Positions 12,401 through 48,400 of a DNA stretch of 64,000 nucleotides are shown one piece after another. The translations under genes and the position numbers were made by a program. This stretch comes from Phallusia mammillata (taxonomy: Eukaryota). The number at the start of each line of letters is the position of its first letter. The first letter of the stretch is position 1. Location: contig OZ281498.1 in the NCBI GenBank assembly GCA_965637545.1, forward strand, positions 4,774,001-4,838,000, given 5' to 3'. The notes beneath the pieces are model-generated. The model saw only the letters and a program-made list of their open reading frames with translations. It had not been told where the DNA came from and made no database searches.

Positions 12401-15400
12401 GTGGACACATCTAAGGTCACCTCGTCCCTTCAGCAAGACTTGATCAACTCCACAGCAAGGTAGGCTACATTCTGTGACAAAAATTTTTGTTGGGTGTTCA
12501 ATCAGGGGTTAATGTGACAAGCTTTAATTGTTACAAATTGATATAATATGCACATTTCATAAACTATTATTTTGCTTCTCCGGATAATGTATCTAACTAA
12601 TCCGACTTTTCGACGTCCCATTTGAGATATTTTTGATAATGTAGAGCAGAAAACAGTTTATGACCATCTTTGTTGGTAAATACAAGTTTAAATATTTTAG
12701 GGGCTGTTAAGTATAGTGTCAAAGATAATCGGAGGGATTTCGCACTTATAACGCATAGGAAACTTCAATATAACGGCGAGATACTTTGTGTTTCTTGATC
12801 CGTCAAATGACTCTTTTTCTGCATCAACAAAAGGCGGTTCATTTTTCTTATTACGAAACGAAACCACCCCAAACTATTATTACGATAGGAAACCACCCAA
12901 AACTAATGTTTTGAGTGAGTCATACTTTGATCAAAAGTTGTCAAGCCTCTCCCAAGCATTTTCAAATAGGCAATATATAATACAATGCTTAGAAAATAGC
13001 GTGTTGTTGCCAGACACGACGTGAAACCTAGCAAGGATGGACGACTGTGGTATTCGGGGTCGACAGCCAGGTTTGCATTAAGGCAATGGAATCTGGCGTG
13101 TAACTATAGATTGCATGCTTGTGACCAATGACATCGGTTTCGCTGATTTGTGTTCTGTGTGTCTTTGTGCGCTGTTTCGTGTTTTGGCAAAACGTGACAT
13201 TTGCTGTGATGATAATGCTTCAATTTTTCATCTTTCCAAACCCAAGGACCTGGAGTTTGGTGTAAAGGTTGGAATTTGATGTGATAATATTATCACAGTT
13301 GATTTGCAAGTTGTGAAAAAATCGGCATTAAAGTGTGAATTGATGCAAATTTGACTTTGATTCTGATTGTTGTGCTTTGTTGTATCTCAGCAGTTTTTTA
13401 TGCGACTTTTTATTTCCTCAAGATGGCAAAATTTATCAAATAAAAATCATGTCAATAGTTAGGTCAAAATGGGCCAATTATCACAAAATCAATTGAAATG
13501 GCATTAGCATTTGCCGAAACGTTTGATTAATAAAGCATGTCGCTTTTTCATTATATTTGTGCCGTTATCTCCTCACTAAACTTATGAACAGACCCATGTA
13601 TAGTGATCAAATCCAATTAATTAGTCGATGACTTCCTATCTTGAACTGTTCTAGCGCCACTGGCAACTTGAAAATTGTTGAAGTGGACGACGAAGGAAGG
13701 TTTGTTCGTGTTCACAATTCCTCACCAACCCTGTGTGAGAACATTGGAGGATGTCTGCTTCAGCAAAATGTGGCTGGGCACCCGGTTGCTGTGTTTCGAT
13801 TTCCACCAAGGACCAAATTACAGCCGTGTCACACTACCACGGTCAGTTGGTATTTTTATATGTGTACAGTAGAAATCTTAAAACTACGCAACCCCTATCA
13901 AAGTTTATGCTAGAGTTGTAAGTCATCATTTGTTTTTCCGGTCAGGTATAAGTTTGAATATCATGGGCTTAATTTGGGCCTGACTTCATCACATTTGTTA
14001 GCATTTTGGGTCCAAAATCGGGCTTTCAAAAAACGAAAAAACGGACTTAAAATTTTTAATTAAAACTTAACATGGGCGAGATAAAAACAGAATACCCAGA
14101 GAGCTTGTATATAATAAAAACATTTGGTGACATCGGTTCAAGGCGACAAAATTGATTGTTAAACGTCTGCAAAGAGTGTATTCATAATAAACAAGCTCCT
14201 TGGTGATATTGTTTTTGGTCAAGCGAATTGTGTTTAATTTACCTGCCATATTTGTTGTACTGTTTGACTGTGGCTAAAGATTGTTGGACTATGTCAGTTT
14301 ATACTATAAACTATAAACTTTATAGCCACAGAAAAAATGTTTCATATGACCCACGCTGTTATCGTCTGGTCCCATTTGTAGGTTTGGTGTTCGGGATCAT
14401 TGGAAGCAATCCACGACCCTCCATCCCATTACGTGTGGAAACAGTTGGACAAATGGGGAACTGGGCCAGAATGTACAACTATCTTGTGCAAACCAAACGG
14501 CCAAGCTGTAGCATGGATGACATCGGCACCGGTAATGGCTACAATTTCATTTTCTGATCTAACCTTACAGTGAGATTTGATGCTGTTTTCGGCTGAATAA
14601 CATCACTTATGTTTTATTGCAGAGAATTTCTCGCGTGTCGAGGGCTTATCAGTATCAACCGGACGTCGCTGCTCAAACCCAGGAAATGCAGCGACTTGCA
14701 CAAGAAATGAAAGATAGACAAAAGGATAGTCAAACCCAAGTAGGAAATATTACAGACGGTGTTTCCTCAAACTTTGTCATAAACACCAAGTCAATGCATA
14801 TTTTTGTTTACAGAACCATCAAGGTGATGGATATGGTGGAGAAGAAAAGTACGGTCGTGTTGCAGCTTCGCTTCCAGCTAGTTACGGAGTTGCACCGACT
14901 CTTTACACAGATTCACCCACAGTGCCAATGCCCGCGCCCACACTAAAACGGTTAGAGAGTTTTTTTAATGGTTTGTGTGATTGAAGTTAGCAAAATGTCT
15001 AAAAGGGTTGTAAATCACATAGACCCAAGATAAACTTTATAGGAGTAGAGAATACAAATCACTGGTTCTCATCCTTTTTATATTCAAAGAAATTCCACAA
15101 CAACGTGCCCCCAGACTCTACTGACATGTTAAAACTAGAATGTTATGTGTTTATATTTGCGTTGACACCTCAATGTGAAAGTTGCCTTGATTCTGGTAGT
15201 CGCTCTGTCGTTTTTAAGTAAAGTAGGAGTCAAAAACACTCTTCCAGCGATACAATAAATTTTACGTGGGCAAAAAATGACCAACTGACGTGCGATTTCG
15301 TGTGTTATAAAAAGGTCATGCGTACAATTTGCAAGATTTTTTATATTATTTTAACTACCTGCAGTTTGAAAATCAGTGATAGAAATGGTATAAACACATC

Positions 15401-45467: not shown

Positions 45468-48400
45468 ATGACAGACCTTGTTCAATTGTACGAGAGCAGG
45501 AAAAGAGAAATTGCCAGTACTGTTTTAAACAGTCATTCCAAACTATGTATTGATGCATTACTGGTAAGTGCTGTATGTAAAACTACTTTTAAGCAGTTAC
45601 TATTGTATAGAAACCCCACCCCGGATTGCAGTTTCTATAGAACTGTTTGTGAATATATCCAGGAAGCAAGTTAGCATGAAACAATTAATAGTCTGACTGT
45701 CAAGTTGGGTATGACAAAGCATACAAAGTCGTTATGTTATAAGTACGCAACACACAACTAGTAATATCTAGTCGTATCATATCTGCTTGAAATCATTTAG
45801 CAATGGGTTTTTATTTGCAGGATGGGATCAGCGCATTGGTTACAGATCTTGATACTCCTGCACTTAGACGCAATAAAAATGTGGAAAGCTTTCTTAATCG
45901 ATGTAAGTAACGGCAAAATTATCACTTGGATTTTTTTCTGATCTAAATCTTTCTGATTAAAAACATATATATTTGTATGTCATAGGCTAAAAATCAGTCA
46001 TAAATTACTGTTAAATCAAGTAATTTGAGGTTTTTTTTATGATAGATTGTCCAAATAAGTAGGTTTATATTGAAGTGAAATATAAAAGTAAATAACAAAA
46101 TTAAATTTATTGTACATTGATTGCTAATTATCCTTGTGGGCTGGAAATGATAATTTACGCAAAATTGCTGTCATGCCTATAAATAATCAATAACTATGAC
46201 GGCATGAAACAACATGCACCACACACAAACTAAATTGACAATTGTGTATACATAGACAAGATTGGGATTGGGTATTAATATGTATTTGTGCACAACATGT
46301 TTAAATATTAGATCTGCTGCTTTTTTGTCCTCTTATTCAACACAAGCAATTTAAACTATTTTTTTTTAAATGCTACTTATTATTGCCACAACCAAACCTC
46401 CGAATATTGCATCAGGTTCTCAGAAGTTAAATTGTTAATGAATAAACTGTTGCTGCCAGGCATATTGTATCAACAAAATTTTAGCTCTTCCAGCAGTCTT
46501 TAATAAAGTATGTCAACGTTTCGATGTCCCATATGAGACACCTTCATCAGGGTAATGGCATAAATTGCAAACACAGGTTATTATAAAGCGAAAAGGGCTG
46601 CAAAACACACACACAAAAGGGGCGGTGGTAAAACACGCAGTGCGTACCAATAGTCTTGTGATAACACTGTTAAATTGTTAACTTTTTTCTCAATAAATAT
46701 TGAAAAATGACTTGTTTTTTAATGTGTAAGTGGTCCTAAAATAATAATAATGTAAAAAAAAACTTTGAGTATTTGTAAATGACCGTAAGTCATTTAAATG
46801 TTAATGTGTGGCTCTACTTTTTAAATACTTCTTAAAAATATGCTGGAAAAAGTAACAAACAAAATTATACTTTAGACTCTGAGCCAATCAAAACCCTGCG
46901 AGCAAAACGAATGCAAGCAGGAGATTTCTCAGTGGTTAAAGTTATTGGAAGAGGTGCATTTGGTGAAGTACAACTTGTGAGACACAAGCCATCAAAAAGA
47001 GTCTATGCAATGAAGTTACTGAGCAAATTTGAAATGGTCTGTACTTTTCATTGAAAGCATTTGCTTTAGTAAATTGTGTGTGTTTTATGAAAACAATAAA
47101 AATATTTGTTTACGTAACACTAAACATGGATCTGTTTATAAGCTTAATGCTGAATAAAATGGCCTAAATCAGGGGTGGGCAACCTTTTTTACTGTAGGGT
47201 CAATTATAAATGTCAAAATTGGATCGCGGGCCGCACATGTGCATAACACAAAGTGATTTTGCTTTGTTTCTTACCAAATATGCTTAACTACAAGTATAAT
47301 TCGTATTTGATTCTAACCATATTTTGCCAGATCGCAGAAAACTAGCATCAGGCGCATTAATCAGCTCAAAAATATATAATAATTGGACTCGTTTGCCAGT
47401 ACTTTTGAAATCCAAGTGTCTCTGCGGGCCGCACAACCTTTAATGAAGGGCCACAGGTTGCCCGCCCCTAAATAGATAAGCGGCATGCTTATTATTCAAA
47501 CGTTTAGGCAAATGCTCATCATGCTATATCACTGATGATGGCATGAGCATTTGCCGAAACGTTTGAACAATAAAGTGTGCCGCTTTTTACATCCATTTGA
47601 GCTGTTTTTTGTTATTTGTTTATGTTAAAATAGAAAAATTCCTGTTGTGTTGGTTAAGCAGTTAAAGGTTAAACTGTTTTACATTTGTGCAGATCAAGCG
47701 TTCTGAATCAGCCTTCTTCTGGGAAGAGAGAGACATCATGGCCCTTGCTAACTCTGAATGGGTTGTTAAGGTAATAAATCTGCTAATAGAAATGTTTGTC
47801 ATGTAAAGGACATTTGGTGTGTTTCCCACATTGACTGCCTACTATAAGTTACTGTAATTTTGGAAGAAGCATTTTTGTCATAATGCAAAGTAAACTTGTG
47901 TTTGAAACTACCATTTTATTCACTTGGAAATTTTTTGTACGTTTTTTTGTACGACTACTGTACAAGTGTATTAACATTTATTTCATCATTTATTTGTCAT
48001 TAATGTACTTATAATAGCATTTTTAAGTTTATTTCTATGAACTAATTCATGTGTTACATTTTAGAAAAAAATGATAATATAAAAAACTGGGTAAAATGTT
48101 GTAGAAATAAGCATAAAAAAGATGTAGATTAGTATATACATAGGAAGCTCTAAATAGCAAATAGAGGCAGAATCAATATACAGCATGTTAATAATCACCA
48201 TTGTATTTGCAGTTGGAGCATTCATTTCAAGATGAAAAGTATTTGTACATGGTTATGGAGTTTATGCCTGGTGGTGATTTAGTCAACCTAATGTCCAACT
48301 ATGATGTCCCAGAGAGATGGGCCAAGTTCTACACTGCCGAAGTCGTACTTGCACTGGAAGCAATACATTCTATGGGTTATGTCCATAGGTAAGTTATTCA

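Follow-up and report, generated by a model that had tools for sequence, protein, structure and literature searches.

Minimal hammerhead motifs in a tunicate genomic window are very probably remnants of Penelope-like element insertions

A reverse transcriptase (RT) and a GIY-YIG endonuclease joined in one protein are the combination that defines Penelope-like elements (PLEs). The minimal hammerhead ribozymes (min-HHRs) of PLEs have a helix II of 7-8 bp and a helix I of 4-5 bp, with one nucleotide left unpaired behind A9 and palindromic positions 15.2-16.2 (PMC4209133). They occur in thousands per genome, mostly as single motifs from truncated PLEs and in some cases as opposite-strand pairs; as monomers they are inactive, and as dimers they cleave weakly through an intermolecular helix III (PMC4209133). 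PLE insertions are marked by extensive 5' truncation, an inverted and 5'-truncated copy beside the 5' end, and a tail of 30-40 bp often present at one end only (PMC8557442). For one PLE studied biochemically, both DNA strands were cleaved and extended and two internal RT start sites delimited the tail; its hammerhead needs the protein of the element to cut and is dispensable for insertion in vitro (PMC11167929). The role of the PLE hammerhead is still described as unclear (PMC8557442; PMC11167929). We analyzed a stretch of 64,000 nucleotides from the tunicate Phallusia mammillata (assembly GCA_965637545.1, contig OZ281498.1, positions 4,774,001 to 4,838,000 of the forward strand; hereafter the window, with positions counted from its first letter), in which a first-pass annotation made from the letters alone had described dispersed intronic hammerhead mini-elements. 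The dispersed hammerhead motifs of the window are real, and they are very likely the min-HHRs that PLEs carry near their 3' ends and in their pseudo-long terminal repeats (pLTRs), the copies being remnants of PLE insertions.

For detection, a covariance model comprising helices I and II (R1) was built on an alignment (A1) of 25 natural min-HHRs of five sequence types, 24 from other loci of the genome and one being the type B copy of the window. Copies were admitted to A1 only if their core was exact and at least four of the outer pairs of helix II formed; no selection was made on helix I, the inner helix II pairs or the extra nucleotide. With filters off, R1 gave seven matches in the window (E values 5.4e-13 to 1.6e-4), the next match having an E value of 6.8. 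These seven are exactly the motifs listed at six loci by the first-pass annotation, whose coordinates are thus borne out. Its listing was not complete, however, as the family A fragments at 21653-21758 and 47116-47169 had been missed, and, while it was right that several families are present, it had counted at least three where four types (A, B, C, and E) occur in the window. The pattern CTGATGA-N4-34-GAAAC occurs four times in the window, compared to 0.30 expected from shuffles. The genome-wide enrichment implied by the earlier reading was also found: CTGATGA-N8-30-GAAACGT occurs 3067 times in the 240-Mb genome, against 37 times for the reversed control, and the 37-nt family A hammerhead was found 922 times with at most three mismatches, against 0 for its control. 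All 150 scored candidates (150/150) reached an R1 E value of 1e-7 or lower. One more CTGATGA...GAAAC at 37123 was rejected and treated as a chance match, because it has no helix II and no R1 match.

The Rfam hammerhead models gave no hammerhead match in the window, either at the gathering threshold or at E values up to 10, and a search of the 240-Mb genome with RF00163 gave no match, nor did the control genomes. The motifs have neither loop 1 nor a hairpin helix III; because of the latter the blank result in Rfam is expected and does not indicate absence of the motif.

At the loci, a short 5' strand leads into CUGAUGA and an additional A or U; a stem-loop follows, then GAAAC, GU with one further base, and finally a short 3' strand. 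The shared order of boxes had been claimed for all six loci and is recognizable in the seven motifs, but the copy at 13499 is without CUGAUGA, that at 38921 is without ACGU/GUH, and three others have mutated boxes (see the rows starting at 18228, 18335, and 25004 in Table 1). The core (C3 U4 G5 A6 N7 G8 A9 ... G12 A13 A14, A15.1 ... U16.1 H17) is invariant in the 25 copies of A1 by construction, because the selection pattern fixed those letters. The G10.1-C11.1 pair and an unpaired A or U after A9 (25/25) are invariant in A1 as well, and so is the self-complementary ACGU to which helix III had been said to be reduced; this last feature does not extend to the window copy at 38921, where it is lost (ACAAAG-U-G). 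An AU-rich type has AUUAAU or AUAUAU in the place of ACGU, both palindromic.

With the specified structure, 77% of the cells of A1 were paired; shuffling lowered this to 62%, and sliding the partners to 32-49%. Helix II itself was paired to 83%, in sequences pre-selected for at least four outer pairs, and in seven of its eight pairs both sides change, the shuffle and slide controls being far lower. Its stems are unrelated in sequence (GGCA/UGCC, GGUGUCUC/GGGACAUC, GGCGUCUU/AGGACGCC, GCCC-ACC/GGU-GGGC, and GACAA/UUGUC; the AU-rich type stands beyond these five), in agreement with the earlier observation that stem II differs in sequence and still pairs. The first pair of helix I was formed in all members of A1 (C-G in 18, A-U in 5, U-A in 2) and the second in 76%. 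The covariation claimed for stem I is convincing for these two pairs only. Beyond them, helix I extends to 5-7 bp only in types D, E, and AU-rich, with one compensatory change (AUGAC/GUCAU to AUAAC/GUUAU). Thermodynamic folding of monomers predicted helix II in all types and helix I only in types D, E, and AU-rich, while folding of homodimers merely extended helix II intermolecularly; such folding is uninformative for a ribozyme that depends on tertiary structure. A long helix II, a short helix I, the extra nucleotide after A9 and the palindromic ACGU mark the motif as a minimal type I hammerhead of the PLE kind, as had been proposed.

The motifs are physically linked to PLE coding sequence elsewhere in the genome, where a GIY-YIG profile search gave 90 matches; natural copies only were used for all PLE comparisons. 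At four loci, GIY-YIG matches are followed 370 nt downstream, on the same strand, by type D hammerheads; three of these matches fall in open frames of 845 aa and the fourth in one of 487 aa. At locus L089, the examined 600-aa part of a 973-aa open frame matched both RVT_1 (E 4e-8) and GIY-YIG (E 4e-5); about 230 nt beyond the stop lies a min-HHR of the AU-rich type, whose helix I has 7 bp. Since the copies at L089, L091, and L092 are 99.7-100% identical at the protein level, this element is young. Autonomous elements encoding RT and GIY-YIG, with such motifs downstream of the open reading frame (ORF), are present in the genome.

Type B, with more than 700 first-look candidates in the genome, has a common 3' end and a variable 5' reach (117 to more than 630 nt), and its longest copies (L088 and L035) enter GIY-YIG coding sequence; type B therefore consists of 5'-truncated copies of an endonuclease-encoding retroelement. 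More generally, types B, C, and E are each the 3' part of a PLE lineage, cut short at variable 5' points, and the longer copies of these lineages contain coding sequence for GIY-YIG. Among the R1 matches there are four same-strand hammerhead pairs 2593-2598 nt apart, which are the pLTR-ORF-pLTR arrangement expected for tandem units. In the window itself, tblastn with three PLE protein pieces found no PLE coding remnants at E values up to 0.01, in line with the first-pass statement that it holds no RT or GIY-YIG frame.

The anatomy of the insertions was followed in family A, for which 25 independent loci were mapped on a natural reference of 128 nt (L008:1562-1689, here called the unit). Head-to-head inverted dimers were found at 20 of the 25 loci. 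In each dimer one arm is 5'-complete or nearly so (starting at unit 1-5) and the other starts at 11-59, save for one dimer with both arms complete; complete arms overlap by the palindrome ATAT. At the 3' side, the end of one arm falls at unit 82-113 (mostly 95-107) and that of the other at 99-128 (122-128 in 19/20), so that only one end carries a tail of about 30 nt. Flanking direct repeats of 10-15 bp were found at 13 of the 25 loci, and these target-site duplications agree with the earlier claim that the elements were retrotransposed. The same insertion features were found for types B and C, and the window pair at 18228-18423 has the same tail asymmetry. The copies thus carry the published PLE insertion signature of 5' truncation, inverted partner, one-end tail and variable target duplications.

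First-look candidates for family A number more than 1700; the commonest form of the family is 128 nt long, without an ORF, and begins 6 nt upstream of C3. Exact family A hammerhead pairs are up to 433 nt apart, and the four loci examined had distances of 251, 433, 213, and 225 nt. These four loci (L093-L096) carry a longer form, which rules out that family A is a fixed element of 128 nt. The long form, with about 290 first-look candidates, extends at least 220 nt more upstream, occurs as inverted pairs with the tail at one end only, and is flanked by target duplications at 4/4 loci; its upstream part showed no similarity to PLE proteins. RNA contigs, taken from small Logan assembled contig sets, carry this upstream sequence beside the unit (loose ends before 47526). 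The commonest form is therefore a 5' truncation, or a short variant, that ends just upstream of the hammerhead, and family A is probably a non-coding PLE derivative mobilized in trans. The first-pass idea of non-coding mobile RNAs mobilized in trans fits family A, but not types B, C, and E, which are truncated PLE ends.

In types A, B, C, and E, which are otherwise dissimilar families, the sequence AATAAA follows the predicted cleavage site at a distance of 5-15 nt (e.g., L008:1602-1615, L081 on the minus strand, and window 47568-47575), and type A and L081 both have TATGAACAG about 100 nt downstream. Both sequences may be part of an RT recognition or entry region, or a polyadenylation signal.

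The steps that would produce such copies can be pieced together from copy anatomy and from what has been published on the biochemistry of PLEs. The target DNA would be nicked by a PLE protein combining RT and GIY-YIG domains, and reverse transcription would begin at one of two internal sites of the RNA, about 55-90 nt downstream of the hammerhead, giving 3' ends with or without the tail of about 30 nt. The RT would often stop early, resulting in 5' truncation; an inverted, 5'-truncated second copy would often be added head-to-head, and repair would leave the target duplications of 10-15 bp. Family A would very probably be copied in trans by a PLE-type protein. As for the ribozyme, the literature suggests that two copies would pair through the self-complementary ACGU to form helix III and would cleave after GUH, weakly and assisted by protein, in multimeric transcripts.

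Several points weigh against assigning the motifs to PLEs in this way. Helix I has only 2-3 bp in types A-C, and on thermodynamic folding the monomers of these types favor an alternative pairing between the two core boxes. The nearest PLE to family A among those compared is L081, with about 64% identity over the 3' region of hammerhead and tail, and the length given for the family A long form is a lower bound only. Moreover, family A copies (L002-L030) and many B and C copies (window 18335 and 25105) begin 5-6 nt upstream of C3, which is not the cleavage site, and this hot spot of 5' starts is not accounted for. Finally, the RNA evidence consists of assembled contigs, which carry no information on the ends of molecules, and the role of cleavage is taken from the literature.

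One rather doubtful idea would give this boundary a function: in its 128 nt, the family A unit may amount to the smallest natural substrate for a PLE RT, consisting of the hammerhead, about 55 nt and two RT entry sites, in which the folded hammerhead, or a protein bound to it, acts as a physical stop or turn-around of cDNA synthesis. It is suggested by the fixed 5' boundary 6 nt upstream of C3, which is common to many B and C copies, and by the palindromic ATAT that joins the arms of complete dimers. If true, the PLE hammerhead would have a structural role in integration and in the formation of inverted copies, rather than or besides RNA cleavage.

Non-LTR retrozymes, in which short head-to-tail repeats are cut into unit-length RNAs, circularized and reverse transcribed, are a quite improbable source of the motifs. 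A 2026 preprint derives animal retrozymes from PLE pLTRs, and one RNA contig (run X2, depth 18) goes back 62 nt, from 47587 to 47526, inside the family A copy. This partial head-to-tail junction could be a genomic partial tandem or a circular RNA, but a single back-joint is too little evidence for circles. By definition, retrozymes have tandem repeats of 150-450 bp that contain canonical type I hammerheads with loop-loop contacts, while minimal variants are assigned to PLEs (PMC7229834). No short tandem arrays were found among about 250 matches listed; close pairs are head-to-head (17 divergent pairs within 5 kb among the R1 matches, and no more than 1 convergent), and a distance of 2.6 kb separates the same-strand pairs, so that the retrozyme analogy of the first-pass annotation did not hold. 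In addition, the ends of the family A unit do not coincide with the ribozyme cleavage site.

The window as a whole holds about ten insertion remnants of four PLE-associated families (A, B, C, and E; Table 1). The full consensus core is kept only in the copies with hammerheads at 46550(-) and 47532(+); the other five of the seven motifs are mutated or without the first box, and judged by their letters most window copies (5/7) therefore appear mutationally dead. A weak Rfam match to mir-722 at 47493-47571 only reflects the hairpin between the two family A arms. Next to the listed copies, 71 nt at 31973-32043 (+) showed 74% identity (E 6e-8) to the post-hammerhead tail of the L081 PLE and are probably another old 5'-truncated PLE end without a hammerhead.

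Table 1. Hammerhead-bearing copies and related fragments in the window; unit positions refer to the 128-nt family A reference.
Type	Position	Strand	Extent and state	Similarity and R1 match
Family A	13498..13611	+	unit 13-127; 5' truncation inside the hammerhead, without CUGAUGA (starts inside helix II), tail kept	blastn 83% over 115 nt against L008:1562-1689; R1 13482-13533, E 1.6e-4
Type C, left arm of head-to-head pair	18228..18340	-	tail of ~30 nt; hammerhead 18285-18340 with G12>A (AAAAC) and weakened helix II	R1 E 6.3e-6
Type C, right arm of pair	18335..18423	+	without tail; hammerhead 18342-18397 with U4>A (CAGAUGA)	R1 E 1.4e-7
Family A	21653..21758	+	unit 24-128; 5'-truncated, first hammerhead half gone	blastn 86% over 106 nt, E 1.5e-26
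Type C	25004..25105	-	starts just upstream of hammerhead 25051-25105, G8>U (CUGAUUA); 3' end adjoins (TA)n(GA)n microsatellite	R1 E 2.6e-6
Type E, old copy	38819..39054	+	hammerhead 38914-38965; both core boxes and 5-bp helix II (GACAA/UUGUC) intact; ACGU/GUH changed to ACAAAG-U-G	blastn 65% over 266 nt against L080; R1 E 3.9e-6
Type B	46439..46667	-	last 229 nt of endonuclease-encoding PLE, 5'-truncated; hammerhead 46505-46560, all core residues, 8-bp helix II	85% against L088:1820-2049; R1 E 5.4e-13
Family A, tail fragment	47116..47169	-	unit 70-123	blastn 81% over 54 nt
Family A, inverted partner arm	47478..47536	-	unit 3-60, degenerate; first box lost (AUGAUGA), UAAAC for GAAAC	
Family A, main arm	47526..47610	+	unit 1-85; hammerhead 47522-47573 intact, sense to host gene	R1 E 4.9e-12

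Both intact hammerheads lie within an expressed gene. RNA contigs over 45800-48200, from four studies and without differences from the window, join the exons 45820-45902, 46876-47035, and 47692-47770 (+); the introns spliced out, both of the GT..AG kind, are bridged from 45902 to 46876 and from 47035 to 47692. The type B copy is therefore intronic, as it lies between the first and the second of these exons, and so is the family A copy at 47478-47610, which lies between the second and the third. The intronic position claimed for the motifs is thereby established only for the copies at 46.4-47.6 kb. Repeat-matching contigs, on the other hand, have many differences and continue into unrelated sequence; they come from other family A and B copies inside longer transcripts. 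A different high-copy repeat of about 300 nt (47164-47470; 84% to L035:2602-2884) lies between exon 46876-47035 and the family A pair, and no other stretch is as heavily represented in the RNA contigs; its summed depths reach the thousands in run X2.

That the intact hammerhead of family A (47532) is sense-oriented within a verified intron of this gene could be taken to indicate host-selected ribozymes that regulate processing of the pre-mRNAs of this and neighbouring genes, like the conserved intronic hammerheads of amniotes. This is very improbable, since the motifs belong to families that run to hundreds or thousands of copies with target duplications at their flanks, essential positions are altered in five of the seven window motifs, and min-HHR monomers show no detectable cleavage in vitro (PMC4209133). 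Hammerhead 47532 stands alone, and it belongs to a class whose monomers do not cut by themselves. Because both intact copies are solitary, and a transcript of the inverted pair would hold one sense and one antisense copy, neither dimerization in cis nor cutting of the host pre-mRNA is expected. We infer that the motifs in the window were carried along as passengers when elements retrotransposed.

Chance matches to short core boxes in hairpin-forming DNA transposons resembling miniature inverted-repeat transposable elements are hardly credible: several copies do form long inverted repeats, and the weak match at 47493-47571 resembles a microRNA precursor, but the genome-wide enrichment over the reversed control is about 80-fold, helix II shows compensatory changes across five unrelated stems, target duplications vary from 10 to 15 bp, the outer ends are variable and not fixed terminal inverted repeats, and the motifs are physically linked to RT/GIY-YIG ORFs. 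An origin from tRNA or short interspersed elements (SINEs) likewise found no support in ARAGORN, which finds no tRNA in the window.

For annotation, the reading as PLE insertion remnants means that the motifs should be masked as PLE-derived repeats, and entered neither as ribozymes of the host nor as mobile RNA of a new class. Several PLE lineages are available in the genome; each has a covarying min-HHR of its own, and one has near-identical, young copies. The 128-nt derivative of family A is very abundant and recently active, and provides a compact substrate for studying what PLE RT recognizes and what purpose the hammerhead serves; for specialists, its interest lies in a non-coding unit that has the whole PLE insertion signature and a 5' boundary just upstream of the hammerhead.

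Other repeats were observed beside these. At G000:C1:2640000-2700000 a trio of hammerhead matches recurs three times with a period of about 18.1 kb, which suggests a recent tandem segmental duplication carrying PLE fragments. The window stretches 54869-55333, 50422-50538, 40072-40133, and 61710-61775 are interspersed repeats with 76-85% identity to the flanks of the unrelated loci L085, L090, L091, and L083, and without PLE protein similarity. Weak Rfam matches at 5746-5824 and 61445-61480 (transfer-messenger RNA and plastid untranslated region) are driven by T-arm sequences like GGGTTCGAATCCC; they may be remnants of tRNA-derived repeats, which are suspected because the sequence is T-arm-like and ARAGORN reports no tRNA gene.

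Compared to the PLE min-HHRs described by Cervera and de la Pena (2014, PMC4209133), the motifs studied here have the same core boxes, the unpaired A or U between A9 and 10.1, the G10.1-C11.1 pair, a long helix II (4-8 bp here), a short helix I and a palindromic ACGU or AUUAAU/AUAUAU. They are also alike in occurring in thousands of copies and several covarying families, mostly solitary but with some opposite-strand pairs, and downstream of RT and GIY-YIG ORFs. The differences are the tunicate host, a helix I that is even shorter in types A-C, and family A, a very abundant non-coding derivative whose commonest form has only 128 nt. The insertions share 5' truncation, the inverted partner, the tail of about 30 nt at one end, two classes of 3' ends and variable target duplications with those described by Craig et al. 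(2021, PMC8557442) and Frangieh et al. (2024, PMC11167929), while here a non-coding unit of 128 nt shows the full signature and the arms of its complete dimers overlap by ATAT.

The metazoan non-LTR retrozymes (Cervera and de la Pena, 2020, PMC7229834) are similar in being non-coding, hammerhead-bearing, probably PLE-dependent and low in GC, but they have canonical hammerheads with tertiary loop contacts, head-to-tail arrays of 150-450 bp and abundant circular RNAs. None of these was seen here, where the RNA data are contigs only. Sm-alpha of Schistosoma is a SINE-like, short, high-copy and non-coding element of about 335 nt with a canonical type I hammerhead. Family A resembles it as a short, high-copy, non-coding element with a type I hammerhead, but combines the minimal PLE-type motif with a PLE-type insertion structure. 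At the level of sequence, the elements appear to have every feature by which PLE min-HHRs and PLE insertions are recognized, and to lack those that define retrozymes. As tunicates are mentioned in neither the 2014 (PMC4209133) nor the 2021 (PMC8557442) paper, the tunicate elements are newly added examples of a class known since 2014.

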